Part shown: positions 8,972 through 62,588 of the stretch, one piece after another
Position numbering within the stretch: the first letter of the stretch is position 1
Layout: every line of letters begins with the position of its first letter
Assembly: GCF_003918875.1 (NCBI RefSeq)
Contig: NW_025765443.1
Coordinates: forward strand, 62,001-126,000
DNA length: 64,000 bases
Reading direction: 5' to 3'
DNA from: Haliotis rubra
Lineage: Eukaryota
Translations under genes and position numbers: made by a program
Notes under the pieces: generated by a model
What the model saw: only the letters and a program-made list of their open reading frames with translations
What the model was told of the DNA's origin: nothing
The model's database searches: none

Positions 8972-9028
8972 TTAAATTTGATAAAGAGTCTGCATATGCG
9001 TCAGATGTATGTTTCCTTTCCTGAATGA

Positions 9029-16209: not shown

Positions 16210-17246
16210 AGTCGTCGCCACGTAGATAAAGCCTGATGTGTTGTATCTTCTCTAGAACTGAAGTGTTCAGGTTCACAGTCCAGGTGGGATTTGTCTCAAT
16301 CATTGTATGAGCACATGTCAATGGAGAGCGATGGGCATCTGTTGTGGCTCTGCCGTCAACACCCAGTCCTGCTCCATAATCGTTTGCATTATTGTATAGA
16401 TTACTACTCTGACTACACGAGCTTCGCAGAGCAATATTTTCTGAAAACAGGAACACAACATAAGCATGACAAGTGGAATGAACACATACTAGTGACACGT
16501 TGACATGGCAATACCTATATGCATCTTCCTATACTCTAGTTTCTGACAGTACAGACCAAACCATCCCCTCTGACACATGTCCTCACCATCCATCTGACTA
16601 CAGGGAGTTGAGAGGAACGTGTCACAGAGCTCTGTGGTACTGCAGTGACAATGGATATCTGTTTGAAAAACATAGTTCTCCTTGTTACTTGGCATATTTA
16701 AAGCTCCATGCAGGTAGCAAAAGTAATGTAAGTCCCCATGGTTACTAGTATGGTGATCTACCTTCAGATGCTGGCGATCTATAGCTGTGTTTTATATTAT
16801 ATTGTCTTCTGTAATTACACTGATTTAGTTTTAACATGCTAGTTTTATGTTCATATCTGTGATACTCTAGTATTTGTACTGCACATCTTTGACAGGTTTA
16901 ACAGTTGACAATGTTTTCATTTTTGTATTGTATGAATTGTTTTCGTCACGATATGGCTGAGATATTGCCGATGTGACGTTAAATATTAACTCACTCACTC
17001 ACTCATATTTATAGGTTTGCTTGAGAACATAGTGGTAGGATTCGTGTGAGTCAGGTATGATTTATAGTCACATCGGCAATATTTCAGCCATATCGTGGAT
17101 GGGATTCGAGGATAGCAAAGTATTTGTGATTCAAGACTACAAATCTGCATATAGTTACACTTGTTTTACATTTCGTGAATAACGTCCCTACAAATGAGGG
17201 CCGGGGTGACACAGACCACAAGCAGTCCCACCCAGCACCATTCCAT
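16210..17246 (-). pseudogene. Unit B2, inverted 5' exons: signal peptide 17246-17192, Cys/EGF 16658-16539 (donor lost), FTP N-half 16440-16210
   Basis: MEWCWVGLLVVCVTPALI; CHCSTTELCDTFLSTPCSQ..CQRGWFGLYCQK; NIALRSSCSQSS..GVDG..CAHT..NPTWTVNL..RLYLRGDD. It is the inverted counterpart of 28090-29525. Confidence 0.9.
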
Positions 17247-17589
17247 GTTGGATATCTAAAACAGAGGCAAAGAAAGTGAAACTTTCCTGGTCATAGTCTC
17301 CTGACAACAAATATATTAACATGAGGGTCAGCATTTCATAAAACTTTGTAATTTTAGTGAATCCAAATGATATCAAAACAGGATTTGTGATACCTTTCAA
17401 GGCGCGGACATGTAGTCGGGATGCGATTGATCTAAATAATAAGAGTGCCAATTTCGTAAATATCAAGATGTTTGAATGACCGAAAGTTCACAGTACTTCA
17501 CGTATGCCAATAACAATTGCCATCTTATCTCTTACCATAACTGTAATGAAACAATCCCAATTGTTAAGTTGATATTTTACATTAGATAT

Positions 17590-17903
17590 CAACAAAACAT
17601 TAGGAAAATAGCTCTCACCATAGCCTTCCCCGAGTATTCACCGGACAGCCCACTTCCAAGTTGCGCGAACCTATTTCACTGCGCACGTGCTATGAGCGCA
17701 GCCCAGCTGTTGAAACCAGTTTTCCCCCGAAAAGTCGGGGGAACATTAGTGAATCGTTTGAACTCCGATTTCGCGCGGGTTTTTTCATCGCGTTATTTTT
17801 CAACTTTATAAGTTGAATTTGCATTTTTGATGATTTGTTTCGGTAAGTCCATACCGAAAGGTAGCAGAATCTGCAAAGTTGTGGTTTACGTTGCATGTGA
17901 CCT
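17590..17903 (+). mobile_element. Other arm of the Kolobok-like element
   Basis: Ends in gttgcatgtgacct-TTAA followed by the reverse-oriented continuation of the same LINE 3' UTR. Confidence 0.55.
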
Positions 17904-19380
17904 TTAAACTTAACTTTGAAAGTTTTGGGACTAAAGTACCCTCTCATGAGTACAATAATTTTACTTTACTTTAACCTCCTGTGAGGATACAGCCAATAAC
18001 ATTCACAGTTGCTAATTTATACTACAATGTTTAAAATACATTTATCTATTTACAAAACATATTATTCAAAATGTATCTAATAATTCTATTTCCTTTAAAC
18101 AATCAATTATTAAATTATAATTAACATTATGAAAAAGATCTTTGACTGTTTTGACATTGAAATATTTATCCCTTGTGATGGAAAAGCGTGTCACAAATGA
18201 AACATGTGAGAACAAAACATATTTATAATGAAACAAAATGCTTACAGAATGCTATGTAGTTCACATTGTTGTAATTCGTTAGCTACTTGGGGTACTTACA
18301 AAGTAGCACTATTGTTACGAAAAAACCAAGAGACTGAAATGAAAAATAGCCTCGTAATACCGAACGAATGACTTACAGACTGAGTGAATTAAACAGATGG
18401 ATAACATAAACCCTTAAGTGTTTCAAACTGAGAATCAACGACAATCACTCTGTCATTATGCCTGCTTGATAATAACAGGTCACAATGATTACACAAGCCA
18501 CGTTCAAATAGTTTCTGATTAATGATTTTCAAATTCCAAACCAATCTTTTTTCTTGTTTTAATTTAATGTACAGTCATATTATACTAGATAGACATCTAT
18601 TCATCTATTTTGGGAATTAACAAATCAATTTAAATTCACTTGTTAAATCAGTAATGGATACAGCAGCTTACACATTTCACACTGTGTCCTATCGCTATTT
18701 CTCATACGAAAAGGCAAAGTCATGTGCTCACAGTTTTGCATATAGTATTAACTATAAGGGCAAAGAAGACACGTAAACTTCCGAATTGAAACAAAAGCTA
18801 ACCAATAGTTCAGTATCTGTATCTTGTCCATGTACATGCTTATATCTTATAAAGTGTTTTCATAACAAGAGATGACAATCTGTCCAGAACAGCAGCATTT
18901 CACAGTCCCTGCTTTCAATGAAATACCATGTGATATTTTTGTTGACTTAGTTTTCTTTGCATGTACATGATATGCTTTAGAAATACTTCATGGTAATCTT
19001 GTACTTTAGCCGTGTGATTTCTTCAGATCCTTAAGATGAACTGATGAAGTCGGTAGGTTTCCCATGCCCTTTTAATATGAACCACGATCCCCAGGTTCAT
19101 AAGTTTTAAGAAATCTCGTTTAAAAAATCTCACCTATGTCTTACAATTCGTGCATTTGTACAGAATCCAAGTAATCTATCATTGTAAAACCAGATATATT
19201 TTTAAAAAATCAAACTACAAACCTCGGAATTAAAAATGATAACGAATCTTTAGTGCACTGATACACTGGATGTGAAGCCTCATAAGTTTTAACTTTTACC
19301 AACTTGAGTTTATATGCATCATGTCCCTGGTCAAACGGTTGAGATTCTCTGCTTATCATATGTGTCTTTCATCTGTGCAG

Positions 19381-20513
19381 TTCAGGAGAAGGCAACGGCA
19401 TGGAGATACTTGTGGGCAACCAGATGTGCTACAGCTGGTCGTCTACTGAACATCCCCCTCCTATAGCTAACGTCACCTGCCGCCAGCCACTGACAGGAAC
19501 CACGGTCACTATACGGATACCTGGTCCACTGAAATTCCTTACTTTGTGTGAAGTGCAGATATTTGGTATGTCATGGCTATGTGGATTTACATAGTTGGAT
19601 ATGTTGTTCATTGGTATGAACTAGAAAAGGTTTCACTATGGATACATGTATTATCTATCGGGCTGTTGAAACATATTAAATTTGAATGGATATTGCAGCG
19701 ATGAGCTAAACATTTTGCACCCATCTTTAGGACTCTTAACATTAAGTATAATCCTGTTATTACTTAAATTCAATGCCCAGTGAGGTTTTCTTTATTAAAT
19801 TGTTCATCTTTTCAACAACAATGAAAATTGTATCTATCAATCAACTGTATTCATTCAGTAGAGTATACCACAGGCCTATGATACAATAGCAAAACTGGAG
19901 TCGACGTCTCACGGTGCCTGTTTGATTCTAATCCACATTACTATGTATATACCAATGGTAAGCTTTTTGACCATGCATTCGTTCGTGTACGCCATTAATA
20001 GATTGACTTGGTGTTATCCAAATTTTCACACAAATGGTAATATTTGAACGTACTGAATCGTCTTTGTAGGTCATACATGGTGTCATGGTTGTTCGTCTGT
20101 GTCCTATGAAAGAGATACCTTGCGCTGAGAATGTGGGTTGGAATAACGGATGGGACTCAACACACAACAACACTAAAATGTGTACTTTGTTTAGAAATTT
20201 TAATCTCAAATATAACATATGTTATGTTACATTTAACCACTTCCTGAAAGAAAATATGTATTCATGTTTGAAGTGGCGCATATGTTTTATCAAGGTTTTA
20301 GGGTATAAATGCATTACATACAGTTCTACATTATGTATATGGTGACTTTATCTGAAAATGTCAAACAATTATCAGTTTGCAGTGATGGGTGGTTTTCTGA
20401 AGATTGTGACAAACGGTACAGGTGCCTTAGCAGTGCTGATGTATGTGACAAGCTCACTGGTCGCTGTTCTGGGGGAAGTCTCCCAGGATATTATGGAACC
20501 GACTGCCAAACAG
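19381..20513 (+). pseudogene. Unit B2, non-inverted exons: FTP C-half 19381-19565 (1-nt frameshift) and EGF 20376-20513 (two Cys lost)
   Basis: GMEILVGNQMCYSWSSTEHPPPIANVTCRQPLTGTTVTIRIPGPLKFLTLCEVQIF; 185 nt versus 186 nt in C and D. Confidence 0.85.
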
Positions 20514-20552
20514 GTTTGAGCATAGCTAGAATTTTAGTTAAATTTGATAAAG

Positions 20553-20796
20553 TGAGTGAGTGAGTTTAGTTTAAGTCGCACTCAGCAATATTACAGCTAC
20601 ATGGCGGCGGTCTGAAAATAATCGAGCCTGGACCATACAATCCAGTGATCAACAGCATGAGCATCGATCTGCGCAATTGGGAACCGATGACATCCGTCAA
20701 CCAAGTCAGCGAGCCTGACCACGCGATCCAGTTAGTCGCCTCTTACAACAAGCATGGGTTACTGAAGATCAATATTCTAACCCGGACCTTCAAGGG
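20553..20796 (-). mobile_element. SINE-like family S1 (segmental duplicate of 8727-8971)
   Basis: Same insertion site and TSD as 8727-8971. Confidence 0.85.
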
Positions 20797-20853
20797 TTAA
20801 ATTTGATAAAGAGTCTGCATATGCGTCAGATGTATGTTTCCTTTCCTGAATGA

Positions 20854-20926
20854 GTCCACACGGGGGTTGAAAGGCTCTTAGCGTTACCCAGCACCCACCA
20901 CGAGGAAGTGGTTCTTCACGGGTGCC
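20854..20926 (-). ncRNA. Isolated LINE 5' head containing an HDV-like ribozyme
   Basis: Reverse complement GGCACCC G TGAAGAACC ACT TCCTCGT GGT GGGTGCT GG GTAAC GCTAA GAGCCTTTCA. Confidence 0.7.
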
Positions 20927-21767
20927 TCATGCTTCATTTATTCACTTCCTGGTAGTTCATACCGGTATAGCTGTACAGTGTATTGAACAACTCTGAGCTG
21001 TGGGTGTAAGAGGTGAGTAGAGCCACGGTTTTGTTCATAATGCTCTAATCCATTCTGTCTATATAAATGAAAGATCATCACGTGATTAATAACAGTGTAT
21101 CGGCGTCAGATTCTGTATGTGATAACATCCTACGATCCTGTTAGTCAGATATTGGTCATTAACATACATCGTTACCCGTTCTTTCCTACACAGTGATTTA
21201 TGAGCTAGACCATATCTTAGTCTTGAAAATAATTACTTCAGAACAATTTCAATTACGTATTTCAATAGAACCGCACCTCATCTGCTTTTTTTCATATGTA
21301 TATGAAGGGAACGTGACTCTGCTCACCGTGACCTAGATTTATGCAGGATTTAAGATGTATACAAACTGCACAATGGACTCAGGACTGTGTATAACAAAGC
21401 AATATCGCGTTCAATGCACAGCGAATGTAAACATTTCACGATCACACCACAGTTGCACTGCGCTTTGTTCAGACATTTCTCCACGACCGTACATTGAATA
21501 AAACCATATAACTGCATTTGGCTATGCGTACTATTCTAAATATATCCCCAACTAGCTGCTATGAAAACCTCTTTCTATCCTCGTAGTCTGTGTAAACGCG
21601 TCGAGTGAGTGAGTTTAGTGTTAAGCCGCACTCACCAATATTCCAGCTATATGGCTATTGAATGACTACGTACAACAGAGTATAAAGATGTTACAATCAA
21701 GTGCATACATGCTTGAGCAAATTATGAATCAGTGGTTGGCTATATGAATCCAAAATTTACTTCCTTC

Positions 21768-22116
21768 TGACCCGCCTCTGTGGTGTAGTGGTTAGAGCGT
21801 CCGCCCGGAGAGCGGAAGGTCGCGGGTTCGATCCCCGACCGCGTCATACCAAAATACGTTAAAATATGGTACTTGTTTGTTCCTGCCTGGCGCTTGGCAT
21901 TAATGGGTACAACAAAGACTGGTCGGCTCGGAGTCAGTATAGTGTGTCTGAGTGGGGTATCCATGCTTCACTGCGGCCTGGTATCTCAGTGGGCTAGCAC
22001 TATAAAACCAGCTTGTCTGCGCTAGTACAAGCAGCCGCACATACACATACACACGCATGCACGTCGTGATATGAGCGAAATATTCTCTAGCACGACGTTA
22101 AACCCAATTTCACCTC
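21768..22116 (+). mobile_element. tRNA-derived SINE (family S3) whose central domain resembles the Meta/MESC type
   Basis: A box tagtggttagagc, B box ggttcgatccc, then gtcataccaaaa..aaaatatggtac; TSD acttccttc; absent at the paralogous site ~9835. Confidence 0.85.
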
Positions 22117-22606: not shown

Positions 22607-22665
22607 GGCACCCATGAAGGGCCACCTCCTCGTGGTGGGTGCTGGGTCACGCTAAGCGCCTTTCA
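22607..22665 (+). ncRNA. HDV-like self-cleaving ribozyme at the LINE 5' end (predicted)
   Basis: P1 GGCACCC/GGGTGCT (G1-U wobble), P3 ACC/GGT, L3 TCCTCGT, P1.1 CC/GG, J4/2 GCTAA, P2 TGAAGGGCC/GCGCCTTTCA. G1 is the first base after the TSD. Confidence 0.8.
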
Positions 22666-25600
22666 CCCCCCCCGTTGTGGACCCGGGGGCATATTAGGTC
22701 CACCAACCCGTTTGCCGTGGGTTGCGCCCCTGTGTCGGTGGAGGACGGGAGGCTGGTGGTTGAGGGCACTGGGAGCCTGGAACCGTGTTCCTTTTGCCCA
22801 ACACACCACTTCGCCCCTTACTTCACCTAGACGGGTGGTAGAACTGGTCCGGTTCTATCAATCGGCTGGTCATGTCATGCCCTGAGTATGGACAGCGTGT
22901 TGTTAACGGCTATTGTTCACAGTAGGTCTATCTAACACTACTTACCAGTAATTTTTGTGTTTTGTTAAATTGCCTAGAGTCCAATGCCAGAAGGCGGTGG
23001 CTCATGGGCCAATCTGGATATACGAACCTCTGACTTCTGTATTTCTTGGGAAAAGTGTCATGGGCCGAACCAGCCTGGCATTTCTTCTTTTAGTCATTGC
23101 AGCTTTTCATGTTTTTATATCTGGAGTATAACGCTCCTGTAACCCTAATGTTGCAGATTGGTCTCCGCTGCAACATTGTCCTTGTTGACACTCCATGGTG
23201 GATGGGGAACAGAGGTGTCGAATCACATTACTATAACCATGGCTCACAATACCTTTCCTTGTTCATTAAAGCACAAACGCCGTCATGTTGATGGTTTATC
23301 ATCTGACGAAGAAATCCTTCAAAACGTCACAGATTCTTGGCCGAGATTTCTCATCATTGCATCTGAGGATGGCAATCCGTTAAAACTTAATCCCTTTGTC
23401 ATTGCTAAAGGCATCAAAGGTGTCTGTGGCGATGTTAAGAATGTTTCACGTCTCCGAGGTGGTTCTATCCTAGTGGAGTGTGCAAGGAGACAACAATCAG
23501 TTAATCTGCTGTCCTTAAAACATTTTGTTAACACTACAGTTGTTGTCTCGGAGCACAAGACACTGAACTCATGTCGAGGAATAATCAGGGACCGAGCTCG
23601 TTGTCTGTCAGACATGAGCGAGGAAGAAATTGCAGCTGAACTAAAGAATCAAGGAGTTACGGCCGTTAAACGCTTTACCAGAAAACAAAATGATGAAGTT
23701 GTCAAAACAAACACTTATCTCTTTACTTTTGGCCTTGCAGTCCTTCCAAAATCAATCAAAGCTGGGTATTTCAATATCGGTGTGGACGTTTATGTTCCAA
23801 ATCCTCTCCGGTGCAAAAATGCCAGCGATTTGGACATGGAACAAAAACTTGCAGAAATAACACGGTGTGTTACCGTTGCAGTGGTAACCATGAAAGCACT
23901 GAGTGAACAAATGTTATCAAGTGCGCTCACTGCAATGGAGAGCATTTGGCCTCCTCAAAAACTTGTTCCTTTTTCCAACGAGAATCTGAAATTCGTAAAA
24001 TCAAATATACCCAAAATATTTTTTTCTTGAAGCCAAAAAATAGGTTCCAAATCCTTCTGCAACTCCTACCATCAAATATTCAACTGTCATTTCTTCCCCA
24101 CCTCCAGTCACTAAAGTTGTCACAACCTCCGTCATGTGTCAGACATCAATTTCCTGGGTTACAAACCAACTCATTCTATATGATGTTTCTCAGATGTCAA
24201 CAAAACAGATAGACACATCTGTGTCGTGTTCTCAGACAGAGAAATTGTCGGAACCCTTAAGTGACGTCACGTCTGAACCAGATTTGCAAAATGGTAAAGA
24301 TGCATGCAGCAGCCATAAACATTTATCAAACAGTGAAAAGAAAAACACTAAAGAAAAAGACCAGGGCTCTCCAGCACGTCGAGGTGCCTCCTGGGACATC
24401 TGTTGTAGAGGTTCACAATCCATTTGAACCTTTAGAGATGGAGGTCAGTCCCACAACCCCAGTAGATGGGAATAGACCCCACTCCCGATCACGAACTCCA
24501 ATTAAGCCTCCATGAGCTCTACAACCATTATTCAGTGAAATTGTAGGGGACTACGGAATAATCTTAATGATTTACATTTACTTATACAAGATTTTAGACC
24601 GTCAGCATTTTGTTTACAGGAAACCTATTTCAAAGAAAACGATCAATTTGATGTACGACAGTATAATTCATACAATTATTATTCTCCCCCAGGGCCAAAA
24701 GCCACTGGAGGGGCTTCGATATTAGTGAGGCAAGACATAATACACAGTCCTGTTCCTCTGAAAACTACACTTCAATCTGTTGCTGTACGTGTGACCATGC
24801 ACATTGTTTTTACTTTGTGCTCACTGTATGTGCCCCCTTCTTCTTCTCTCCAACCTGCTGATCTTCAAGAACTCTACGACCAGCTTACCAAACCTTGTAT
24901 CATCATGGGAGACTTGAATGGCCACAATCCCCTTTGGGTAAGTCCACATACAAACTGTAAAGGGAAAGTACTAGAAGACTTTCTTTCTAACAACAATCTA
25001 TATCCCTTTAATGATAACTCTAACACATATTTACATCCTGGAATGGGTACATATTCTTCTCTCGATTTATCCATAACAGACTCTGATCTCCTGAATGAGT
25101 TTGATTGGTCAGTCAATGACGACCTATGTGGAAGTGACCATTTTCCAACCATTGTAAAAGCTGTAACTCCGTCTGATGTTCCTCCATGTTCCAAATGGAA
25201 TTTCTCAAAAGCTAACTGGCCTTTGTTTGAAATAATGTCATCTAACAAATTAAAACCTGAACTCTTTAGAGATGTTTCCGACCCTGTGCAATTCTTTTCT
25301 GATGAACTAAACAAAATTGCTGACGAATGCATTCCAAAGTCCTCTACAAATCCTCACATACGTAAACCGTGGTTTAACAATGCCTGAAAGCAAGCTAGGA
25401 AAGCACGGAAAAAGGCTGAACACTATTTCCGTCGCCATCCAACGGTGCATAATTTGAATAAATATAAAATTTCTAACGCTAAAGCCCGACGTACAATTAA
25501 GCACAATAAACGCCAATCCTGGCGAAATTATGTGTCGAAAATCAATTCACGAACGCCTATGTCCAAGGTATGGAACATGATACAAAGAATTAAAGGTAAG

Positions 25601-27889
25601 GGTACTAAATCCAGCATCCACCATCTTAACCATGGAGATCAATTATTGACCAATAAGTCCGATATTGCGAATAAACTGGGCGAAACTCTTGCTAAACACT
25701 CTTCCTCTTCTAACTATGTGCCTCACTTTCAAAAATATCAAAAACAACAAGAGAAGAAAAATATAAATTTCAATTCAGATAATGGAGAAGATTATAATGA
25801 AATCTTTACTATTCATGAGCTCCATGATGCTCTTGAACAAGCTCATAATACTGCTACAGGAGCTGATAACATCCATTATCAACTCCTGAAACATTTACCA
25901 GAAACATGCTTACAAACCTTGTTAAATATATTTGATGATATTTGGACATCTGGTACATTCCCATCATCATGGCGTGATGCCATAGTTGTGCCCATTCCAA
26001 AACCTGGACGGGTTCATACTGATCCCTCAAATTATCGACCCATTTCCTTGACTAGTTGCGTTTGTAAAACCGTGGAACGAATGATCAACAATAGATTAAT
26101 ATGGTATTTGGAATCCAACAATTTAATTACAAATATTCAATGTGGATTTCGGAAAAATCGAAGTATTGTTGACCATTTCGATTTAGAAAAAGCATATGAC
26201 ACTACGTGGAAATATGGCATTTTAAAAGATCTACATGATTTTGGATTACGAGGCCGTTTGCCTCATTTCATATCCAACATTTTAACTGACAGGCAATTTC
26301 AAGTCCGAGTGGGTTCGACCCTATCTGATCATTATCATCAGGATCAGGGTGTGCCACAAGGCAGTATTTTGTCTGTCACTTTATTTAGTATCAAAATTAA
26401 CAGTTTATCTAAAGTTTTAAATGATTCCCTTGATGGGTCACTTTTTGTGGATGATTTTAATATTTCTTGTCGTGGTAAAAATATGCGTACTATTGAACGG
26501 CAAATGCAGTTGTGTTTAAACAAAATAGATAAATGGTGTCTTGAAAACGGCTTTAAATTTTCTAAATCCAAAACTAATTGTATACATTTCTGCCGTAGGT
26601 GGCCGATGGTGGCGCGGTTGCTTTTGCCACTGTCATTGGGTCCAAAACAATCTCTTCTTGCAGAAGCAAACGCAATACTAACAGCTCTTAAATATATTAA
26701 AAAACACCGTAAATATAAACAATATATAATATTTTCAGACTCTCTTTCTTGCCTTCAGGCCATTAAAAATATTTCTTGTAAACATCCACTTTTAATAGAA
26801 ATTACAGAATTATAAAATGATCTTGCAACTGGCCAATACGACATCGTCCTCTGCTGGTTACCCAGCCACGTTGGCATTTCTGGGAACACGATGGCTGATA
26901 TTGCTGCTAAGGCAGCACTCAACAAATCTGTGACACCACTTCTGATCCCATACTCTGATTATAAAGCCAGCATTAGAACATACATCCGCGATCTGGTGCA
27001 AAAGAAGTGGGATGCCCAAGAAGGTATCAATAAATTACATGCAATCAAACCAACTATAGGTTACACCTACTTGGGTTGTCAGTCCAGATTCGAAGAGGTC
27101 ATCATACGACGATGTCGTATTGGCCACACAAGATATATTCATGAGTACCTATTGAAAGGTGAGGAACCTCCGTTTCGTATCCCTTGTGATGAAAGAATCA
27201 CGGTCAAGCATGTCCTGCTGGACTGTGTTGAATATTCCATCACAAGGGATAAGTATTTTAATGTCAAAACATTGAAGGATCTTTTTTATAATGTTAATTA
27301 TCATTTAATAGTTTTTTAAAATTAAATTTTTAATAGAATTAGATTTGTTAACTGATTTGTAAATAGATAAATATTTTATTATTGGTAATTTACATTAGTC
27401 ACTGAGATTGTTAGTGGCTGTACCCTCAAAGGGGTTGACGTAGCGTAAAATTATTGTCCTCCTGAGAGGGTACGTAAGTCCCAAAACTTTCAAAGTAAAA
27501 CATAAATTATCACATTTTAAACGTAGTATTTTTGTTATTTTAACTATTGGCTAAATTTTCCTACAATCGTCAGCGGCTGAAGGGATGGTGTAAATCCAAC
27601 TAGGATCCATGCAGGTAGCAAAAGTAATGTAAGTCCCCATGGCTCCTAGCATGGTGATCTACCTTCAGTTGGTAGCGATCTATAGCCCATTTTTATATTG
27701 TGTTATAGGTTAAAAGGTTGTAGATTCAATAACTAGTTTTACATGTATATCTGTGATACTCTAGTTCTTTTACTGTCCTTCGTCGGCAGGTGTTTTATAA
27801 TATATATATATTTTATTTCAATATCAAATGTTCTCGTCACGATATGGCTGAAATATTGCCGATGTGACGTTAAATAATAACTCACTCAC
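22607..27889 (+). mobile_element. Full-length but decayed I-group (Nimb-like) LINE: ORF1 with zinc knuckles, ORF2 APE-RT-RNase H
   Basis: 12-bp TSD tcgtcgacctta (22595-22606 / 27890-27901); empty site at ~13735; GDLNGH, SDHFP, YRPISLTS, QGVPQGSILS, FVDD; stops and internal deletions; (ACTC)n tail. Confidence 0.95.
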
Positions 27890-28468
27890 TCGTCGACCTT
27901 AAAGCAAACGTTACAAAACTTGACACACATCGCTACCATGCGATAATACAACGACGTTCTAAAGAATTGCCCAAATGTATGAAGAATCAAAGCCATCAAA
28001 ACACCTTCAAATGGCCATCAATTATCCCGCCATCAAACAAGTTTCCTTTGCGTCTGAACACAACGCGTTCTATTGTATTTATCTTCCAGTTAATGTTAAA
28101 TATTAACTTAACAATTGGGATTGTTTCAATACAGGTATGGTAAGAGATAAGATGGCAATAGTTATTGGCATACATAAAGTACTGTGCAATTTCGGTCATT
28201 AAAACATCTTGATATTTACGAAATTGCCACTCTTATTATTTAAATCAATCGCATCCCATCTACATGCCCGAGCCTTGAAAGGTATCACATATCCTGTTTT
28301 GATATCCTTTGGATTCACTAAATTTTCACATTTTTCACATTTTTATGAAATGGAAACACTGTTGACTTTGTCATGCTGACCTTCATGTTGATATATTTGT
28401 TGTCAGGAGACATTCTGTTGAGACTGACTATGACCAGGACTTTTAAAATTCTGTTTTAGATATCCAAC

Positions 28469-31400
28469 ATGGAATGGTGCTGGGTGGGGATGCTTTTGGT
28501 CTGTGTCACTGTGGTCCTCACTGGTAGGGACGTTATTCATGGAATGTAAAACAAGTGTAAACATTTGCAGATCTGGGCCTAGATTTTCGAGGCTCTCTGA
28601 GAGCTAAGATAGTCGTAAGTCAATGTTAATGTATGGCACTTACGACTATCTTGGCGCTAAGAGAGCTTCGAAAATCCAGGCCCTCTGTAGTCTTGATTCA
28701 CAAATACTTTGCTATTTTCGAATCATTTCACTATGTTCTGAAGGTAAACCTTTACAAATGATACGTAACAAGTTTTTTTAAGCAGATGCAGAATGCCACT
28801 GCACTACATCAGAACTCTGTGACAAGTACCCCTCAACTCCCTGTGGTCAGGGCATGTGTTTGCAGGGATGGTTTGGAATGTACTGTCAGAAACGTGAGTA
28901 TGACGTAGATGCTTATAGATAAATCTATGTCAACGTGTCACTAGTATTTGTTCATTCCACTTGTCATGCTTATGTTGTGTTCCTGTTTTCAGAAAATATT
29001 GCTCTCCGAAGATCGAGTAGCCAGAGTAGTACACTAAATGGCAACTATGGAGCAGGACTGGGTGTTGACGGCAGAGCCACAACAGATGCAGGGAGCCAGC
29101 CATTGACATGTGCTCATACAATGCGTGAGACAAATCCCACCTGGACTGTGAACCTGAATACACCAGTTACAGAGAAGATACAACACATCAGACTTTATCT
29201 TCGCAACGACCGTGAGTTGACCCATACGATCAATGTTATACTGGTAACATGAAACGGTGAAAGCAAATGACACTCACATATACTCATAGAAACGAATAAG
29301 GGAACACCTGAATGTACAAGTGTTCCTTTATTTATTTCCAGACTGTTACTCACAGTCCGGACACTTGTGCTTTCATGTGTTCCCTTATTTGTTTCCATGA
29401 GTATATTTTGTGTAGTTCATGAGTTGTTCTCACAAAGGATGTGAGCAAATGCAAAATTATTCCAAAATTTTAGTGGAATTGACATATTATCCATATTAGG
29501 ACGCATTCAGACTAGCATGTCACCAATGTAACATGTGAGAACAAAACATTTATAATGAAACAAAATGCTTACAAAATGCTTTGTATTTCACATTGTTAAT
29601 CGTTAGATACTTGGGGTACTTACAAAGTAGTCATTTGCTACGAACAAACCAAGAGACTGAAATAAAAAATAGCCTCATAATACGAAACGAATGAGTTACA
29701 GTGAATTATAACAGACGGAAAAAAATATACTCCTGTATGTTTCAGGTTGAGAATCGACGACATTCATAATGTTAATATACCTGCTTGATAATAAAACAGT
29801 TTTAGATCAAAATGATTAGAGAAGCCACGTTCAACTAGTTTCTGATCAGAGATTTTCAAATTCCAAACCAATCTATTTTCTTGTCTTAATTTTATATACA
29901 GTCATGTTATACTAGATGGACATCTATTCATCTATTTTAGGAATTAACAAAACAATTCAAATTCACTTGTTAAATCAGCAATGGATACAGCAGCTTACAC
30001 ATTTCAGACTGTGTCGTATCGCTATTTCTCATACGAAAAGGCGACGTCATGTGTTCACGGTTTTGCATTTAATATTAATCATACAATAGTCTGAAATGGT
30101 ACAAGTAATAAATTGAGATCGATGAAAATGTAGATAATTCCATGATGGTTAACCGAGGTGTGGGAAGTCTGAAGTGAGAGAAGGGTGGAGTAGTATTTTA
30201 AACGTGATGCTCACCAGTAAATGTTTGAATTAAGAAGATCTCACAAAGTGTCTTCACCTGTCAGTTTTTTACCGACATGACAATCCGTTTTGTAGACAAG
30301 TATAATCAGTCCATACAAACAATACATGACATTCCTTACCTGCTTTGCGCAGTGCATTACGCTATAAAATCATGTCATAATATTGTTCTTCGTGTGCTGA
30401 AGTGTGGCAGACTGGGCAGTCTGGGCAGTCAACGCCGTGGCATATAATGGCATGAACTGACCATTCTTATCCCTAGTTGATACAGTTAAGTGAGTGGACT
30501 CACTCACTCACTCACTAAGATATTGAGGGACACGTTTCAAATTTGACGACAAATATGCTAGAAGTACATTTCCAATGATTGATATTCAATATCAGAAAGG
30601 AGAGAATACACACCTGTTGAAATCTGTCTTATAAAACACGTCCTGGTAATCTGTGTCACCATCAGTAAATCTAACATGTCGGGGGAATTAGCTCAGGCCT
30701 AGGGCGAAGAATACGCGTGAATTTCCAAATTGAAACAGTAAGTTAACTGATAGTTCAGTATGTACATCTTGTCCACGTATATGGTTATATCTTATAAAAT
30801 GTTTGCATAACAAGAAATTCCGTTAAGAACAGCAGCAGTTCAAAGTCCCTTCTTTCAATGAAATTACAAGTGATAATTTTCTTGACTTGTTATTCTTTGT
30901 ATGTGTATGAAATGCTTTAGAAATAGTTCATGGTGATCTTGTATTTTAGCTGTATGATTTCTTCATATCCCTAGGATTAAATCATGAAGTCGGTAGGTTT
31001 CCCTTGCCCTTTTCATATAGAACACAATCACCAGGCTCATGATTTTTTTTACATATCTCGATTAAAAATTGTCACCTATGTCTTACAAATCGTGCATTTG
31101 TACAGAATCCTAGTGATCATTGTAAAACCAGATATATTTAAAACAAATCAAACTACAAACCTCGGAATTTTAAAATATTAACGAACCTTAAGTGCACTGA
31201 TACATTCGATGTGAAGCCTCATAGGTTTTAACTTTTATCAACTTGAGTTTATATGCATCATGTCCCTGGTCAAACATATCATATGTGTCTGCCATCTGTG
31301 CAGTTCAGGAGAGAAACAACGGCATGGAGATACTTGTGGGCAAACAGATGTGCTACAACTGGTCGTCTTCTGAACATCCCCCTCCTATAGCTAACGTCAC

Positions 31401-34400: not shown

Positions 34401-35149
34401 GCAGTTATAATTTCTCATTATATCGCGGACGCCTGGCAGTTAGATGAAAAATGTATCTTCTCTACTCCCCAGAATGCGTTGATGGAATGTACGGTGATGA
34501 CTGCATGTCACGATGTGGTCAGTGTAAAGACGGCTTAACCTGTGATAAGTCCAGCGGAGAATGTCCCGAAGGATGTCAGGGTAACTTCATGAAAAGCAAT
34601 AAGAAATAATGTATTCTTTCGACCATATGCAAAGGTTTGCTCAGTCATCAAGACGACAGGCAGCTAGATAACTGCTGTTGAAATTCTTATTTTCTATTGA
34701 TATAATGAATGAAGGTAACTTGGTAAGATATCAAGGCAGATGATATGAACCCCTTTTTATGTTCTGAAAGGTTGTACAGAGTGCCCGGCAACGCCAGGAT
34801 ACTCAAACCAGGTGGTGCCAGTTGCAGCAACACTTGGGACACTACTCGTCTTGGCTCTCATCGCTCTGCTGACAGCCATCATTTACAACAGAAGGTAAGG
34901 GGAAGATACTTGATACTTAAGAACAGCGATTGACATTTTGTGCTATATTAACCACATAATCTTATGTATAGGAACGCATTTCTATATTAGAATCATAAGA
35001 ATTGAAACATTTCCGTATATTACAGACTGAGGGTTCAACTGGATGCGTCAGAAAAGAAACACGAAGATAACTACTTGTCTTTAGACGAGAGGACCAAGGA
35101 TCCAGTTGTGGAGAACACATATGAGCACATCGACAATACCACCGAATAA
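28469..35149 (+). CDS. Unit C: F-type lectin/multi-EGF/TM/ITAM-like receptor, best candidate for an intact copy. Exons 28469-28523, 28786-28893, 28993-29211, 31304-31489, 32302-32439, 33407-33544, [34025-34162 acceptor lost], 34242-34376, 34473-34580, 34771-34894, 35026-35149
   Basis: Signal peptide MEWCWVGMLLVCVTVVLT; FTP motifs NIAL..QSS..VDG..CAHT..PTWTVNL..R-x-D..R..LTLCEVQIF; consistent phase-1 junctions; TM VVPVAATLGTLLVLALIALLTAIIY; tail DNYLSL-x12-YEHI. Confidence 0.85.
28575..28683. mobile_element. Palindromic MITE (GGGCC...GGCCC termini, 3-bp TSD tct; PIF/Harbinger-like)
   Basis: Long hairpin; absent in the inverted paralog near 17140. Confidence 0.75.
29281..29403. mobile_element. 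Tc1/mariner-type MITE
   Basis: TIR tactcat(a/g)gaaac(g/a)aataagggaacac with TA flanks; absent in the paralog near 16140. Confidence 0.8.
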
Positions 35150-39269: not shown

Positions 39270-39481
39270 TCTTCAGTAACCCATGCTTGTCGTAAGAGGC
39301 GACTAAAGGGATCGGGTCGCCAGGGTCGCCGACTTGGTTTACACATGCCATAGGTTCTCAATTGCGCAGATCGATACTGTTTATCACTGGATTGTCTGGT
39401 CCAGACTCGATTATTTACAGACCGCCGCGATATAATTGGACTATTGCTGAGTCCGGCGTAAATATAAACTCACTCACTCAC
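39270..39481 (+). mobile_element. SINE-like family S1, 5' truncated
   Basis: cttcagtaacccatgcttgtcgtaagaggcgactaa...actcactca. Confidence 0.8.
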
Positions 39482-48600: not shown

Positions 48601-51600
48601 AGAATTAAATATAATACATACAAATCCTTATTTGCAGATGGGTCCAAGGATGGTGGCGCAGTAGCATGTGCCACTGTCATTGGATCCCGAACAATATCTT
48701 CTAGAATACCGGATAACAGCTCTATATTTACAGCAGAAGCAAACGCCATCTTAACAGCTCTTAAATATATTAATAAACACCGTAAATTTAAACAATATAT
48801 CATCTTTTCAGATTCTCTTTCGTGTCTTCAGGTTATTAAAAATCTTTCTTGCAAACATCCACTTTTATTAGAAATTATTGAATTGTACAATGAACTTGCT
48901 ACTGGCCAATGCGACTTGTTGGTTGCCCAGCCACGTTGGCATTTCTGGGAACACGATGGCTGATATTGCTGCTAAGGCAGCCCTCAACAAATCTGTGACA
49001 CCACATCGTATCCCATACTCTGATTATAAAGCCAGCATTAGAACATACATCCGCGATCTAATGCAAAAGAAGTGGGGCACCCAAGTAGGTATTAATAAAT
49101 TACATGCAATAAACCCTACATTGGTTACGCCTACTAGGGTTGTCAGTCCAGATTTGAAGAGGTCATTATGCGACGATGTCGCATTGGCCACACTAGATAT
49201 ACTCACCAATATTTACTGAAAGGCGAAGATCCTCCGTTTTGCATCCCTTGTGATGAAAGAATCACAGTCAAGCATGTCCTGCTTGACTGTGTTGAATATT
49301 CCATCACAAGGGATAAGTATTTTTAATTTCAAGACATTGAAGGATCTTTTTCATAATGTTAATTATCATTTAATAGTTGAATTTTTAAGAGAATTAGATT
49401 TGTGGACTGATCTGTAAATAGTTAAATATTATATTATTGGTAGTTTCTATTAGTAACTGAGATTGTTAGTGGATGTACCCTTAAAGGGGGTTGACGTAGC
49501 GTAAAATTATTGTCCTCCTGAGAGGGTACGTAAGTCCCAAAACCTTCAAAGTAAATTTAAACTTGCCAGGATTTTTAAACGTAGTATTCTTGTTCTATTA
49601 ATTTTGGCTAACATTTCTTCCAATCGCCAGCAGCTGAAGGGATGGTGTAAATCCAGCTAGGGCCCATGCAGGTAGCAAAAGTAATGTAAGTCCCCATGGT
49701 CCCTAGTATGGTCATCTACCTTCAGTTGTTGGCGATCTATTGCCTATTTTTATATTGTGCTGTCCCCTAAAGTTAAAAAGTTTTAGATTTAATTACTAGT
49801 TTTACATGTATATCTGTGATATTCTAGTTGTTTCACTGTCCTTCGTCGGCAGGTTTTTTATGATATCTGTATATATATTCTATTTAAATGTCAAATGTTC
49901 TCGTCACGATATGGCTGAAATATTGCCGATGTGACGTTAAATATTAACTCACTCACTCACTAGTACTGATATCTTAGTACGATATTGATAAATGGATATT
50001 TGTCAACAAACGTAATAATTTATAATTTGAGTCCATACCGACGGGGTGAACAGTAAATATCTGTGTGTTTGTGCAGCTTGTCTAGGTGGTTCTTATAGAA
50101 CTAACTGTGCCTCCAAGTGTGGAAGCTGCCTTAATGGTATCATATGTAGTAAGACAAACGGAATATGTCCTGGAAGATGTGCCTCAGGGTGAATGAGGGA
50201 CAACACTATGTTATGTCTGCAGCGTGAGTTCTTGGAAAAGTTGCATTTGGAAAGTTGCATTTGAAGTCAAATAGATATTGACTGAAAGGTATTAGCTGTG
50301 GTAGAACAAACGGTCCTGGGGAATGTCCATCAGAATGGCAGAGAGCCTACGAAGTAAGTCTGTATGATTAAAAGAAGGTTAAGCTTGTAGTTTACTACTA
50401 CATATTGTTTTTGTGTTTGCAGGATGTCCAGATGGTTCCTATGGTAGCAACTGCTCCTTTCAGTGTGGAAACTGTCTCAGTGGTGTCAGCTGTGACAAGA
50501 CAAACGGTACCTGTCCTGGAGGATGTGCAGCAGGATGGCAGAGTGATACAACATGTCTACAAGGTGGGTCTGTACGATTTGAAGAGATTGCTAACCCTGC
50601 AGAATACTGTTACTGGATGACTTCATTATGTGTATGTGTGTGTTTGCAGCATGTCCAGATGGTTCTTATGGTATCAACTGCTCCTCCCGGTGTGGAAACT
50701 GTCTGGATGGTGTCAGCTGTGACAAGGCCTTGGGAACATGCCCTGGAGGATGTGCAGCAGGATGGATGAATGACGGCACGTGTCTACAACGTGAGTAACA
50801 ATGGCGTATATTGCACTTAAGGGATATATATATAACAATTAGGTTAATGAACTGAAATTCAAATCTATAGCATATGTACACTCATGTGCCAAAATTGTTT
50901 CAATTTTCAAGATGGCAGATATTTCGGTCTCGTCCGGTTATGGATAATAAAGAATGTGTTGCTTACCTTATCGGTGTCCTGTTGCTTTTTCACATAGTTT
51001 TTCAACATACCAAACATTTTTTATTGGGTTAAAATCTGGACTCTGTGCTGGCCATGGTAGCTGAGGAATGTCATTCCTGCGTTTCCATGTTTCCGTCTCA
51101 AGGGACCGATGCATCGGTGCATTATCATCTTGAAACAGCCATGGTTTGTCAAGGAAATGCTTTACTACAACAGGCCACAAAAAGTTGTCAAGTGTATCAA
51201 TATACTTAGCACTGTTCATGTTCCCATCGACAAACACCAAACACCCCACACCGTAATACGTAATGCACCCCCACATCATCAACTTCATAGACAGCCCTAT
51301 TCCCTGAGTGAAATACCCGAGACACTCGACCCTCCATCTTTCTGATCACTTTCGCCACACTTTCACTCTTCTATCAGGTTTAGCAACAATAGTCATTTCA
51401 TCGGTAAAGATGACCCTTTTCCAGTCCCTATCAACATTCCAACGAATTTTTTCTCTACACCATGCCACAAGTTTTTTCCTGTTGACCTTTCGTATTCCCA
51501 GCTTTTTGCAAACAGTCCGTCGAACAAATCCCAGTGAATGTAAATTTCGTTGAACATGTTCTTTTTGGAAAAGGTTGTTGCACAGACTGATTAAAAATGT

Positions 51601-54600: not shown

Positions 54601-56561
54601 AGAGTATAGACATGGTCAATTGTTGAGTAATTTTGGCGAAAGCCAGCTTGAGCTTCACACATAATCTAAATAGATTTATAAATTACATTCACAGTTCTCT
54701 ATTTATCTGACCACATTTGTGTGTTTTTTCTGACCCCTACAGAGAAGTGTTCCGGCTGGGGAATCCCAGTGACAGCTGTTCTTGGTGTGTTGCTGATCTG
54801 CACAGTGACTGGTGGAACCATATACATCAGACGGTAGTATATTTTGCCTCTTTCGTACAAATACCCACATGTTTCCGAACAGCATTGTATATTGAAATAG
54901 TATCTTGCGGCTATGTAATCACCTGATAGGAATGATAGGCAATGGTTCGTTAAACTATACTTAACTGTGACACAAACGTTTCTTAAGAGAATGCTAACAG
55001 TCATTTTAAACATTGTGCTGAAAAATATGTTTAAGTGATAGCCTCTTCTTGAGCAAGCAAACACTTATGTTTTATCCTCTTTACATGCCGATCCAATTAG
55101 CTATGCAGTGTCAAATATAAAGTTATTTTGTGTTGCCCATTCTTGTTGGATTGGTTCTTTGTGCATTAAATCGTAATTTCTGCTCTGATTGGCGAACTCA
55201 GAACTTGGTCCAAGTAGGCTTCAAGTATACTGATGATCTGTTTTGTTCAATACCCACACAAGCGACAAATATAACTTCTTCTCCAGCGTGTCCAAATGAA
55301 ATACTTTAGAGTACAATTTTACCAACAAGATCTGATTCTTTCTCCGAAGTTGTTGGATTCAGGTTGCAGCATTCGGGGCCTTAGTACAGTCTTCGAAATG
55401 TTTCATGGTAAACATTTAGATGCCCTTTCCAAATTTGACGCTTAGACGAAAATGATGCCCCATGCACGCAGTTCCTTATTTTGTACCACATGTTCCACGT
55501 TTGTAAGTGAACACTTGTCTCTGCAGGTGTTTGCTGCAGGTGCACTGGTGTGGAATGATAGGCTCACCTTTTCACCTGTTACTAGCTGGTATAATATACA
55601 TTCGATAGTAATTCAGAAACACAGGCTGTTGATATTGTCGGAACCGCACAATCAACTCGAGTCGACTGTCCAGATTTCGTATGAATATAGAAAGGCTTTC
55701 GCCGCTTGTGAAACAATATTTCAGAGGTTTGCAAACATTCCAAAATATCTGGTGCACACAGCAAAAACGACTCGACCCCGTCCTAATTCATTTGGCTGAG
55801 AACACCCTTTGACAATATGCTGTTTTGGTTTCAAAATAATAGAGTTCATCTGCATGGACTCTCAGTTTGCAATGTGTAAATAATTTGTTTATGTAGTGAA
55901 GTGATTATGGGTACAACTTCATCGCCATACTGAATGAACTTTGACTTTAGATATTCGTGATGTCAGAAAATCATTCTTCCTCCGGGAAAACCTAACTCTT
56001 GCAAGAAATAGGGCTCCAAACTTTGCATTCATAAGGTATTTCCTATTCTAAATGGTTGTGCACTAGTTCTTGCAGAACATTTCAGAATTCTTTGAGCTTC
56101 AGCTTCTAGATTTAAGGACGGGATCCATTATTAGCAGGTGTCGGGCGAACATTCACAAATAAAAAACGTTTGAAATCATAAAGTATACAATACCTACATT
56201 TCTTAACCTATTAAGATCCTTTTTGAGCCGTTGACCTACACAATACTTTCATGTACTATTAGCCTCAGTGTCTAAGTTTTGTTTTAACTGTGACACAATA
56301 TAAAAGTTTCCACAGCTTAAATCAAGGGCCTTTTTGTTTGTTTCACGTTAGGGTTCTGTTTTCTGAATTTTACCAAATAGCAATAACTATTTTCCCGTCA
56401 AATTACTGAAACACCTGGAGAGCTTGAAGACAAAAAAGAGAGCGGAACACTATGTGACACTTGATGAGAGGACAAAGACAACAGAAAGTACCTACGAACA
56501 TATCGACAATGCAACGCCTTACTACAATACAGTCAATCATCTTCAGGATGAAACTTTATGA
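39664..56561 (+). CDS. Unit D: F-type lectin/multi-EGF/TM/ITAM-like receptor (start codon uncertain). Exons 39664-39727, 40372-40485, 40634-40861, 42805-42990, 43284-43421, [50077-50223 with TGA], 50423-50563, 50650-50790, 53249-53329, 54743-54833, 56381-56561
   Basis: Paralogous exons with AG/GT borders and matching phases; TM WGIPVTAVLGVLLICTVTGGTIYIRR; tail EHYVTL-x10-YEHI..PYYNTV. Functionality depends on skipping 50077-50223 and on an upstream ATG. Confidence 0.75.
40060..40160. repeat. Minisatellite, ~30-bp unit x3
   Basis: ggca(g/c)agggacgttat(t)aagataat(t)gc repeated. Confidence 0.8.
42185..42431 (+). mobile_element. SINE-like family S1
   Basis: S1 body and actcactcac tail. Confidence 0.8.
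43702..43760 (+). ncRNA. HDV-like self-cleaving ribozyme at the LINE 5' end (predicted)
   Basis: GGCACCT A TGAAGGGCC ACC TCCTCGT GGT GGGTGCT GG GTCAT GCTAA GCGCCCTTCA; differences from 22607 preserve pairing. Confidence 0.8.
46728..46889 (-). mobile_element. tRNA-derived SINE (family S2) nested in LINE ORF2
   Basis: 12-bp TSD acatagcaaata; head ggggcggtggggtagcctcgtggttaaagcg...ggttcgattccc. Confidence 0.9.
50877..52060 (-). mobile_element. Decayed Tc1-family element
   Basis: Frameshifted fragments SGRP, IFTDE, FQDDNAPMH, WPAQSPDFNPIKNVW; right boundary uncertain. Confidence 0.85.
53900..54660 (-). mobile_element. Decayed LINE reverse-transcriptase fragment (different clade; CR1/RTEX-like)
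   Basis: QAGFRQNYSTIDH, GVRQGENLSPFLFAIYLND and LLYADDIVL on the minus strand. Confidence 0.75.
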
Positions 56562-57929: not shown

Positions 57930-58098
57930 GGGGGCGGTGGGGTTGCCTTGTGGTTAAAGCGTTCGCTCGTCATGCCGAAGACCCGGGTTCGATTTCCCAC
58001 ATGGGTACAATGTGTGAAGACCATATATGGTGTCCCTCGCCGTGATATTGCTGGAATAATGCTGAAAGCGGCGTTAAAACGAACTCACATACTCGCTT
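57930..58098 (+). mobile_element. tRNA-derived SINE family S2
   Basis: Matches 46728-46889. More decayed copies lie at ~41233-41375 (-), ~41697-41785 (+) and ~62905-63057 (-). Confidence 0.85.
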
Positions 58099-59273: not shown

Positions 59274-59439
59274 CTGAGTGAGTGAGTGAGTTTGGTTTTC
59301 GCCGCTTTAAGCAATATTCCAGCAATATCACGGCGGGGGACACCAGGCATTGGCTTCACGCATTTTCGCCGGGGGGAATCGAACCCGAGTCTTCAGCGTG
59401 ACGAGCGAACGCATTAACCACTAAGCTACCCCACAGCCC
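59274..59439 (-). mobile_element. tRNA-derived SINE family S2
   Basis: (GAGT)n tail; TSD ggattcaat(g/a)caa. Confidence 0.85.
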
Positions 59440-60900: not shown

Positions 60901-61075
60901 TTCTTTGGTTTACTGTGTCTCTCTTTATGAACTGCATTTTCAACATACCCCACGTGGATATCCTTGTAGCTGAAGATACGTCTTCAATTCTTCTAATCTT
61001 GCACTTCTTGTGTCCACATCCGAAACAATAGTACATTCTGGTTTTATTTATCTATGTGATATATATATATATATT

Positions 61076-61118
<43 letters not shown>

Positions 61119-61985
61119 ATATATATCGTGGAGTAGCGAGCAAATAGCCAAAATAACGAGAAAATACTTAATATTCCAAGAACGTGACTGAATTAACGAG
61201 AAAATTTAGTTGAAGTAGTAATTAAGAAATTACCGCAAAACCGATGGCAATCATGTTCCAAAGTCAACAGCTTCGAGTTCCCCTCAAACGTAAAGTACAT
61301 GTGCAACAATGATAAAACAGTTTTCCTGTAAACGCTTGTTGATGTTCGGAGTCGCCCTTACAGGAAAAGAAATGTTAGTGGTCAAGATACACGAGCGCCA
61401 AGTTCCTCGGAGCTTGATCTGTACAATGCATTTACATCATGCATGTACATGATAGATGTTTGTAAACGAACGAGGTGAACGTGACATGTAACTCCGCCTC
61501 TCTTTATTTATATTAGTATATTAAGGGTTTGCTCGTTGTTTAATCCAACACTCATCATGAGTATTTGAGCGTGTGAGTTTTAACTCATTAGAAAGTCATC
61601 ACCTGAGTCAACATTTGTTTGTTTGTTATTAAACTCAGCAATTTTTCAGTTATTTGGCAGCGATCTGTAAATAATCGAGACATTCCAGTAACTGACATCA
61701 TAAGCATAGCTCTATACAGCTGGGATACGATGACATGCATCAACTATGTTAACCAGTCTGACCACTCGATCCTGTTAGTCGCCTTATACGACAAGCATGG
61801 GTTTGCTTAAAATCCAATTACAGTATCTTAAGTGCTTTGGGATAGTATTGCATATTATTAATATTTCGAATTTGTCTCTCAGACTAAAAGAATGTTTCAA
61901 TATTCGAGTACTGAAAGCCTAAAGCTCATCAAATCAGGTTTGTCTGTGTTTTTATCACGATTATAAATGTTTGTTTTTCATTTAG

Positions 61986-62588
61986 GTACACGGCATCGGT
62001 TGGTTCTGGAAAGGACTACTAGCGGTTTGTGTCTTTGTGACTCTCACTGGTAAGGACTTTATTTACAGAATATGAAAGTGTAAATATCTCATATATTTGT
62101 TGGCAGGTATTAATAAGTAGTAATCACTTTCAATCGGGTTAATGTATCTCTTTTCAAACAGATGCCGAGTGTCAATGTAACACCACTACTGCCTGTGCCG
62201 TGTTCCCCTCTACTCCCTGTAGCCAGGTCGGTGATCCAGACAGATGTCAGGAAGGATGGTTCGGTAACTACTGCCAGAAACGTGGGTGTGGGGTAGATTG
62301 GTAGATGTAGTATCACGTTAAGAAGCCGCCGATATTTGTGAGACGCATTATGTATATATATTTCAGAAAACACTGCTTTGCGGAGATCTTGTAACCAGAG
62401 TAGCACATTGTGGAATAATGCAGGCCGGCATGGAGCCGGAGTTGGTGTAGACGGCATTGTCACCACAGATGCCAGGAACGAGCCATGTGCCCATACAAAT
62501 AATGAGTCAAATCCCACCTGGACTGTGAAACTGAACACTTCAGTTCCAGAGAAGATACAACACATCAGACTCTATATCCGTGAAATGC
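61986..62588 (+). CDS. Unit E: 5' exons of another receptor paralog (61986-62049 signal, 62162-62281 Cys/EGF, 62367-62588 FTP N-half); continues beyond the window
   Basis: GIGWFWKGLLAVCVFVTLT; DAECQCNTTTACAVFPSTPC..CQEGWFGNYCQK; NTALRRSCNQSS..GVDG..CAHT..RLYIREM; open frames and intact splice sites; start codon not located. Confidence 0.8.

Follow-up and report, generated by a model that had tools for sequence, protein, structure and literature searches.

Variation in the predicted sugar-binding loops of F-type lectin paralogs from an abalone receptor gene cluster

The receptor cluster and its lectin exons

The stretch of DNA analysed here, 64,000 nucleotides of the Haliotis rubra genome (contig NW_025765443.1, positions 62,001 to 126,000 of the forward strand; hereafter the window), carries several copies of an F-type lectin domain that is split between a 5' (N-half) and a 3' (C-half) exon. 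From its exon content, the window appears to be a tandem cluster of abalone type-I membrane receptors, and we consider this explanation probable as a whole, together with the account of lectin evolution given below. Positive selection at a few positions in two of the loops around the predicted sugar-binding pocket, complementarity-determining regions (CDR) 2 and 3, is well supported; in CDR1 it is only suggestive.

A six-frame search for the stretch NPTW...EKIQHIRLY found four copies: the one at ~16.2-16.4 kb is on the minus strand, and those at ~29.1, 40.8 and 62.5 kb are on the plus strand. They lie in the N-half exons, which are bordered by a ttcag/AA acceptor and an N/GTGAGT donor. An initial annotation of this DNA had placed four exons (B2, C, D and E) at these positions, and every string that it quoted from them was exact (after QSS, VDG and CAHT, and RGDD, RND, RDD and REM at the R-x-D position). 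It had also described all indels as in frame, which follows from the exon lengths, all divisible by three, and from the phase, which is 1 at either end of each exon. The C-half exon that it listed under B2 is not on the strand of the B2 N-half exon but on the other one, and it measures 185 nt rather than 186. The lectin exons are listed below.

16210-16440, minus strand: B2 N-half exon, 231 nt, phase 1-1, identical to RefSeq model P0001 (H. rubra LOC124270065)
28993-29211, plus strand: C N-half exon, 219 nt, part of RefSeq P0160, CDR1 three codons shorter than in B2 and D
40634-40861, plus strand: D N-half exon, 228 nt, with CDR1 at 40672-40701, CDR2 at 40723-40758, CDR3 at 40768-40779 and the start of CDR4 at 40849-40860
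62367-62588, plus strand: E N-half exon, 222 nt, identical to P0004 (LOC124270070), with a two-codon deletion in CDR2 and REM for R-x-D
3-92, plus strand: end of a more divergent C-half exon of A, a fifth gene, cut by the window start
19381-19565, plus strand: B C-half exon, 185 nt
31304-31489, plus strand: C C-half exon, 186 nt, phase 1-1, with the third pocket residue, Arg (QER), two Cys pairs and an LCEVQIF end
42805-42990, plus strand: D C-half exon, 186 nt

A phase-1 intron splits the lectin domain directly after the R-x-D position. The 5' exon holds the pocket His, the first pocket Arg and CDR1 to CDR4, and the 3' exon holds the second Arg and the remainder of the beta-sandwich. The intron is 1.9-2.1 kb long in C and D, which both have the two lectin halves in order. 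In C the codon at the exon junction is C/TT (Leu), giving R-N-D-L-Q-E-R, and the same junction is found in RefSeq P0160, which is gene C.

By sequence profile and predicted fold, the gene C domain is an F-type lectin, in agreement with the initial annotation. Complete domains were searched and modelled as database proteins taken by identifier (P0160 and others), and N-half and C-half were aligned separately. A profile of the N-half exons alone retrieved only F-type lectins from PDB (FBP32 at E = 7e-8, then lectinolysin, the eel agglutinin AAA and SpX), and a whole-domain profile built from 41 family members matched FBP32 at E = 7.5e-97 and AAA at 1.3e-42. The AlphaFold model of the domain (P0160:13-150) has a predicted local distance difference test score (pLDDT) of 95.4 and a predicted template modelling score (pTM) of 0.90. 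Its best Foldseek matches were 3cqo, 2j22, 4gwi and 1k12 (template modelling score, TM, 0.82-0.87), and the best eleven were all F-type lectins (TM 0.81-0.87). The comparison with eel agglutinin that had been proposed as a check gave a match to 1k12 at TM 0.84 and a root-mean-square deviation (rmsd) of 2.2 Å.

At the residue level, the CAHT His and the LY[LI]R Arg are present in all four N-half exons of the window and align to AAA His52 and Arg79, although one relative has His in place of this first Arg. The QER Arg (AAA Arg86) is present in the C-half of C and D and is replaced by Gly (EGNG) in the frameshifted B exon. As for the cation site (h2DGx; Asp38, Ser49, Cys146 and Glu147) and the disulfides Cys50-Cys146 and Cys108-Cys124, the VDG, the Thr/Pro before Cys, the LCE motif and all four structural Cys align to AAA, but the x of h2DGx, normally small and polar, is Arg or Ile here. 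The Cys82-Cys83 pair is absent.

In the receptor layout, a signal peptide is followed by one EGF-like module, a single F-type lectin domain encoded by two exons, a further EGF exon, several EGF exons of the MEGF type, a membrane span and a tail. This architecture was read from conserved flanking exons and from longer relatives; Haliotis proteins were collected by a word search from the open stretch around exon D. P0001 and P0004 are both on contig QXJH01001496.1, a piece of which (L001) is an exact match to the window; the window position is the record position minus 62000. RefSeq labels these abalone genes MEGF10/11-like, draper-like or PEAR1-like. Matches of the repeats to EGF_laminin and other EGF-family profiles are weak; the cysteine pattern and the membrane span are visible. 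The tails carry a conserved pair of tyrosine motifs, YxxL-x10-12-YEHI, resembling an immunoreceptor tyrosine-based activation motif (ITAM). The flanking exons are as follows.

320-4014, plus strand: A, EGF repeats
4118-4594, plus strand: A, membrane span and tail
17193-17246: B2, signal-peptide exon
~16540-16662: B2, EGF exon; the gene is called at 16151-17246
28469-28519, plus strand: C, signal-peptide exon
~28785-28900, plus strand: C, EGF-like exon 5' of the lectin domain
32292-32441, plus strand: C, EGF exon after the lectin domain
33403-34594, plus strand: C, four MEGF-type EGF exons
34773-34895, plus strand: C, membrane span
35012-35143, plus strand: C, tail exon, YLSL-x12-YEHI
43277-43423, plus strand: D, EGF exon
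50043-50795 and ~53206, plus strand: D, EGF exons
54700-54885, plus strand: D, membrane span
56400-56555, plus strand: D, tail, YVTL-x10-YEHI
61986-62048, plus strand: E, signal-peptide exon
62158-62283, plus strand: E, EGF-like exon

A single giant multi-domain gene, suggested by all exons being phase 1-1, was rejected because signal-peptide exon, membrane span and tail recur unit by unit and the RefSeq models are separate.

The ITAM-like tail pattern reads Y-x-x-L-D-E-x-T-K ... Y-E-H-I, with 10-12 residues between the motifs. It was seen at 35012-35143 (C), 56400-56555 (D) and 4436-4594 (A, in which the second motif is YEYT), and in the relatives P0013, P0034, P0157, P0161-P0164, P0167 and P0169. 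Another relative, P0010 (1155 aa), has an ectodomain of EGF, lectin domain and EGF repeats followed by two tyrosine-phosphatase domains (Pfam Y_phosphatase, E = 1e-123), so that activating-type and phosphatase-type tails have one kind of head in common. The homologue of the signal-peptide exon in D (39673-39726) reads N-I-G-R-C-W where B2 and C read N-M-E-W-C-W; the usual start codon is therefore absent at that place (the RefSeq model of gene D has 379 aa).

Loop variation and codon substitution in the 5' exon

Loops were mapped by HMMER alignment to 1k12, with AAA residues as named in PMC5712786. The segment after QSS corresponds to AAA 22-34 (CDR1, with its apex at E26/H27), that after VDG to 40-49 (CDR2, with F45/Y46), that after CAHT to 53-56 (CDR3, following H52) and the fourth to R79-R86 (CDR4). 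All four variable segments thus align to AAA loops, as the initial annotation had supposed, and all four are coil in the gene C model. Its claim that variation is concentrated there was borne out as well. Among the four window copies, 24 of the 34 columns in CDR1-4 homologues are variable, against 9 of 42 elsewhere (Fisher p = 2.3e-5). Partitioning by DSSP into coil and regular structure gave p = 0.03, and a partition-free runs test gave only p = 0.09; neither the CDR nor the DSSP partition was derived from the compared sequences. Across 18 Haliotis domains, high-entropy columns fall in the same four loops. An extra variable stretch in the C-half, PG-x-x-K-[FY], would correspond to CDR5.

The framework and the C-half had been described as nearly invariant. 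The framework is indeed conserved, but at the protein level only (synonymous difference 0.17-0.39), and the C-half is 90-92% identical in protein rather than invariant. Pairwise Nei-Gojobori estimates gave a framework ratio of nonsynonymous to synonymous differences (pN/pS) of ~0.23. The synonymous difference is 0.38 in loops and framework alike, which means that the framework is constrained, not young, and that the loops have no local excess of mutation.

The exons to which codon site models were fitted, 13 for the N-half and 11 for the C-half, came from four abalone species (H. rubra, H. rufescens, H. cracherodii and H. asinina). In the N-half, the one-ratio model M0 gave a nonsynonymous to synonymous rate ratio (omega) of 0.65. 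Model M2a was preferred to M1a (2dlnL = 43.7, p = 3e-10), with omega2 of 5.3 in 9% of codons; M8 was preferred to M7 (2dlnL 45.2, p = 1.5e-10) and to M8a (40.2, p = 1e-10). Restricting the M2a versus M1a test to gap-free columns left 2dlnL at 40.5 (p = 1.6e-9). In the C-half the same comparison was not significant (2dlnL 4.2, p = 0.12). Posteriors above 0.94 were obtained for columns 14 and 16 (CDR1), 35, 37 and 39 (CDR2) and 45 (CDR3), which in D are the codons 40678-80, 40684-86, 40741-43, 40747-49, 40753-55 and 40771-73. The R-x-D columns were never significant in these models.

Exon histories and competing explanations

The two lectin exons have different histories. Within H. rubra, the synonymous difference (pS) was 0.02-0.14 in the C-half against 0.25-0.42 in the N-half in five of six gene pairs (Fisher p = 0.0007-0.008). 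The C-half tree grouped sequences by species, with asi7 beside asi9 (92% support) and all H. rubra copies together, whereas the N-half tree grouped them by lineage across species, with rubE beside asi7 (100% support). N-half and C-half data each rejected the other's tree in the approximately unbiased (AU) test (p = 0.005 and 0.004). In DNA, the D C-half exon is 93.5-95.1% identical to its C and B counterparts, but likeness falls to only ~60% in the 300 nt that flank it at each end. The C-half owes its uniformity to constraint and to the concerted evolution of this one exon; exchanges that recurred within the mid-domain intron are an equivalent description. Much of the pattern of variation confined to one exon, which the initial annotation had attributed to selection, comes from this homogenisation. 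Its claim of confinement stands in that selection was not significant in the C-half, but the near-invariance of the latter owes much to exchange within species.

Not all copies are intact. Locus B, a copy of locus C, has undergone an inversion: its 5' part (16145-17584), with the signal peptide, EGF exon and N-half exon, runs opposite to its 3' part (18185-20550). The inverted part matches 28091-29276 at ~80% identity and the direct part 29514-32480 at 85-90%. Compared with C and D, the B C-half exon has a 1-nt deletion near its 5' end that puts it out of frame from the usual acceptor, and a 123-aa RefSeq model begins at ~19400, within this exon. The RefSeq models P0001 (B2) and P0004 (E) read through into the intron and then stop. 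No C-half exon was found within 10 kb downstream of E (E <= 1e-3), where EGF exons occur only in scrambled order; the E-type gene of H. asinina is complete. B2 and E, two of the four compared copies, are probably gene fragments. Both remain open, free of stops, with a framework omega of 0.15-0.21. A 2-kb segment at 7832-9848 is 89-95% identical to the region 3' of the B C-half exon (19643-21770) and holds a copy of an EGF exon (~8540-8689) with one conserved Cys codon changed to Arg; it resembles a partial duplicate, situated in gene A or behind it.

In the explanation that we favour, the 5' exons are old lineages, some of them common to several species, with a framework under strong purifying selection (omega ~0.07). 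A few CDR2 rim positions (~AAA F45-G48) and one CDR3 position, two residues past the pocket His, have changed again and again at a pace above that of synonymous sites (omega ~5 to 13), and CDR1 changes through in-frame indels and roughly neutral substitution. The 3' exon is constrained and, within each species, also homogenised from paralog to paralog. This homogenisation, which gene conversion or crossing-over in the long and unalignable mid-domain intron would bring about, is the reason that nearly all paralog differences fall in one exon. The property under selection may be the range of fucosylated or other glycans bound, and binding may signal through the ITAM-like tail. A more far-reaching version, which we hold to be doubtful, is that the mid-domain intron divides labour. 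Old, selected 'specificity' exons (CDR1-4), preserved across species as separate lineages, would be recombined repeatedly onto a species-homogenised 'scaffold' exon, yielding a combinatorial germline repertoire of ITAM- and phosphatase-coupled glycan receptors. If true, such a repertoire would be a mollusc innate counterpart of variable lectin receptors.

Several observations weigh against the favoured explanation. The complete gene C domain scored 24.9 bits against Pfam PF22633, below the cut-off of 27.8 (E = 3e-5); with single exons as queries, N-half matches to this family were sub-threshold (E = 1e-3 to 4e-2) and the C-half gave none. The spacing in C and D, H-x28-R-x-D-x3-R, which the initial annotation had given correctly once the junction codon confirmed by P0160 is read, departs from the canonical motif. 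The F-type motif is given as HX24RXDX4(R/K) (PMC5712786); the x26 of AAA is its own numbering, read off the 1k12 alignment, and x28 results from two extra residues in the bottom hairpin. E (REM) and many relatives (RDI, RDR, REI, RQM) do not have the Asp of R-x-D. That the selected sites lie near the pocket is deduced from the AAA alignment rather than from distances measured in a structure. Loop pN/pS was ~0.96 over all pairs, and for four independent sister pairs it was 1.3 (hand-summed), an excess that is not significant (own estimate p ~0.16). The site models were run with our own code, checked only by matching the IQ-TREE M0 likelihood of -1770.88, and the posteriors are naive empirical Bayes values from 10 to 13 sequences. 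None of the sequencing runs was recorded as RNA, and all four examined cover introns as genomic DNA would; variants at 29006, 31431 and 31434 in these runs look like contigs of a paralog rather than alleles.

It is unlikely that relaxed constraint explains everything, with exposed loops drifting neutrally, the differences of B2 and E reflecting in part early fragment decay, and no adaptive diversification. Such drift would suit the whole-loop pN/pS, the unflagged R-x-D columns and the state of the two fragments, of which B2 is parted by the inversion from a C-half that is itself frameshifted and E has none in the 10 kb searched. Yet models with a neutral class (M1a, M8a) were rejected at p ~1e-10, the rejection persisted with the ten complete genes alone (2dlnL 38.3 for the whole N-half), and the B2 and E frameworks retain their low omega and open frames. 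A still less probable possibility is that gene conversion or recombination between paralogs, or misaligned indel-rich loops, imposed a wrong single tree and so mimicked omega above 1. The trees of one gene's two exons do conflict, and the pairwise homoplasy index (PHI) test within the N-half exon gave p = 0.014, a hint of recombination that also counts against the favoured explanation. As recombination can inflate site-model tests, two segments were refitted, each with its own tree. In columns 0-28 (CDR1) the signal vanished, a further point against the favoured explanation: the likelihood-ratio statistic was 0 with 13 exons and 5.3 (p = 0.07) with the ten complete genes, M1a fitting as well as M2a, as relaxed constraint would also predict. 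In columns 29-75 (CDR2-4) it strengthened, reaching 67.7 (p = 2e-15, omega2 ~14) with 13 exons and 48.4 with the ten complete genes, and columns 35, 37, 39 and 45 were flagged again. The signal also survived the removal of all gapped columns, and columns 35, 37 and 45 belong to the ungapped alignment. The diversifying selection claimed by the initial annotation therefore holds for a few positions of CDR2 and CDR3, where omega is above 1. For CDR1 and the R-x-D position, neutral or relaxed evolution is an adequate fit, and the loops as a whole have pN/pS of ~1.

Selection may also be real without concerning foreign glycans, if the loops track a co-evolving self ligand, for instance where gametes or other cells recognise each other, or are targets of pathogen proteins that exploit the receptor. 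The F-lectin bindin of oysters has the same pattern for sperm-egg recognition (PMC5712786). However, in its combination of membrane anchor, EGF repeats and ITAM-like tail the architecture is closer to that of engulfment or immune receptors than to an acrosomal protein, and the His/Arg/Arg triad, which contacts fucose in AAA, is retained. We rate this alternative as improbable, on a level with neutral drift of the loops.

Known systems and neighbouring sequence

The pattern itself is already known from oyster bindin and eel fucolectins. In oyster bindin, positive selection acts at eight pocket sites, and recombination takes place in a variable mid-domain intron; eel fucolectin isoforms differ mainly in CDR1 and CDR2 and retain the His/Arg/Arg triad (PMC5712786). 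What differs in abalone is the membrane-receptor context, with EGF repeats and an ITAM-like or phosphatase tail, and our literature search found no description of this abalone membrane-receptor F-type lectin case.

Like the bindin of Crassostrea gigas, with its mid-domain intron, few selected sites at the fucose pocket and reshuffled half-domains, the abalone genes have 4 to 7 selected rim codons and discordant exon histories. As an acrosomal protein, bindin is secreted; it has 1 to 5 lectin repeats in tandem, comes from one or few genes and is diversified in part by alternative splicing, whereas the abalone genes are many paralogous membrane receptors, each with one lectin domain, EGF repeats and a signalling tail, and their 3' half is homogenised rather than diversified. 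The eel fucolectins (AAA and Anguilla japonica eFL-1 to eFL-7) have the same fold as the gene C model, with several isoforms per animal, CDR1/CDR2 differences and a conserved triad. They are soluble serum proteins, however, in which CDR4 is strictly conserved and Cys82 and Cys83 form a disulfide. At these two Cys positions the abalone domains have Leu/Phe-Gln; they also have one residue fewer between the two Arg, two extra hairpin residues and a variable R-x-D. Striped bass FBP32 (3cqo) is the best match in both profile and fold (TM 0.87, rmsd 1.7 Å) and has a short CDR1 like that of gene C, but it is a soluble lectin of two tandem domains and has no EGF repeats, membrane span or signalling tail. 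In the engulfment receptors Draper, MEGF10 and CED-1, arrays of MEGF-type EGF repeats are followed by one membrane span and a short tail that carries tyrosine motifs, an ITAM in the case of Draper. The abalone receptors appear to be built alike in these parts but differ in their head, an EGF module plus an F-type lectin domain.

Molluscs are without antibodies, which raises the question of how they widen innate recognition. After oyster bindin, these genes are a second molluscan case in which a mid-domain intron of an F-type lectin parts a diversifying half from a conserved one. The CDR2 and CDR3 codons of gene D are candidate specificity-determining residues, and for abalone aquaculture the genes are candidates for variation in pathogen recognition.

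Two related LINE-like (long interspersed nuclear element) insertions occupy 22607-27900 and ~43702-49960, with long open reading frames, for example at 25445-26815 and 46796-48427; the second lies within gene D and separates its first EGF exon from the later ones. Across the whole window no Rfam family, HDV-like (hepatitis delta virus) ribozymes included, scored high enough to pass its gathering threshold. A dispersed repeat of ~200 bp, with copies 70-88% identical and on both strands, lies in introns and spacers of the cluster (2544-2748, 4721-4924, 8769-8972, 20594-20797, 39272-39440, 42220-42396 and 61647-61803); it is probably a short interspersed nuclear element (SINE) or a miniature inverted-repeat transposable element (MITE). 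In H. cracherodii (L006, 25122-27917), the F-type lectin receptor gene is followed ~7 kb downstream by a gene for a C-type lectin, which matches Pfam Lectin_C and, faintly, PAN_1.

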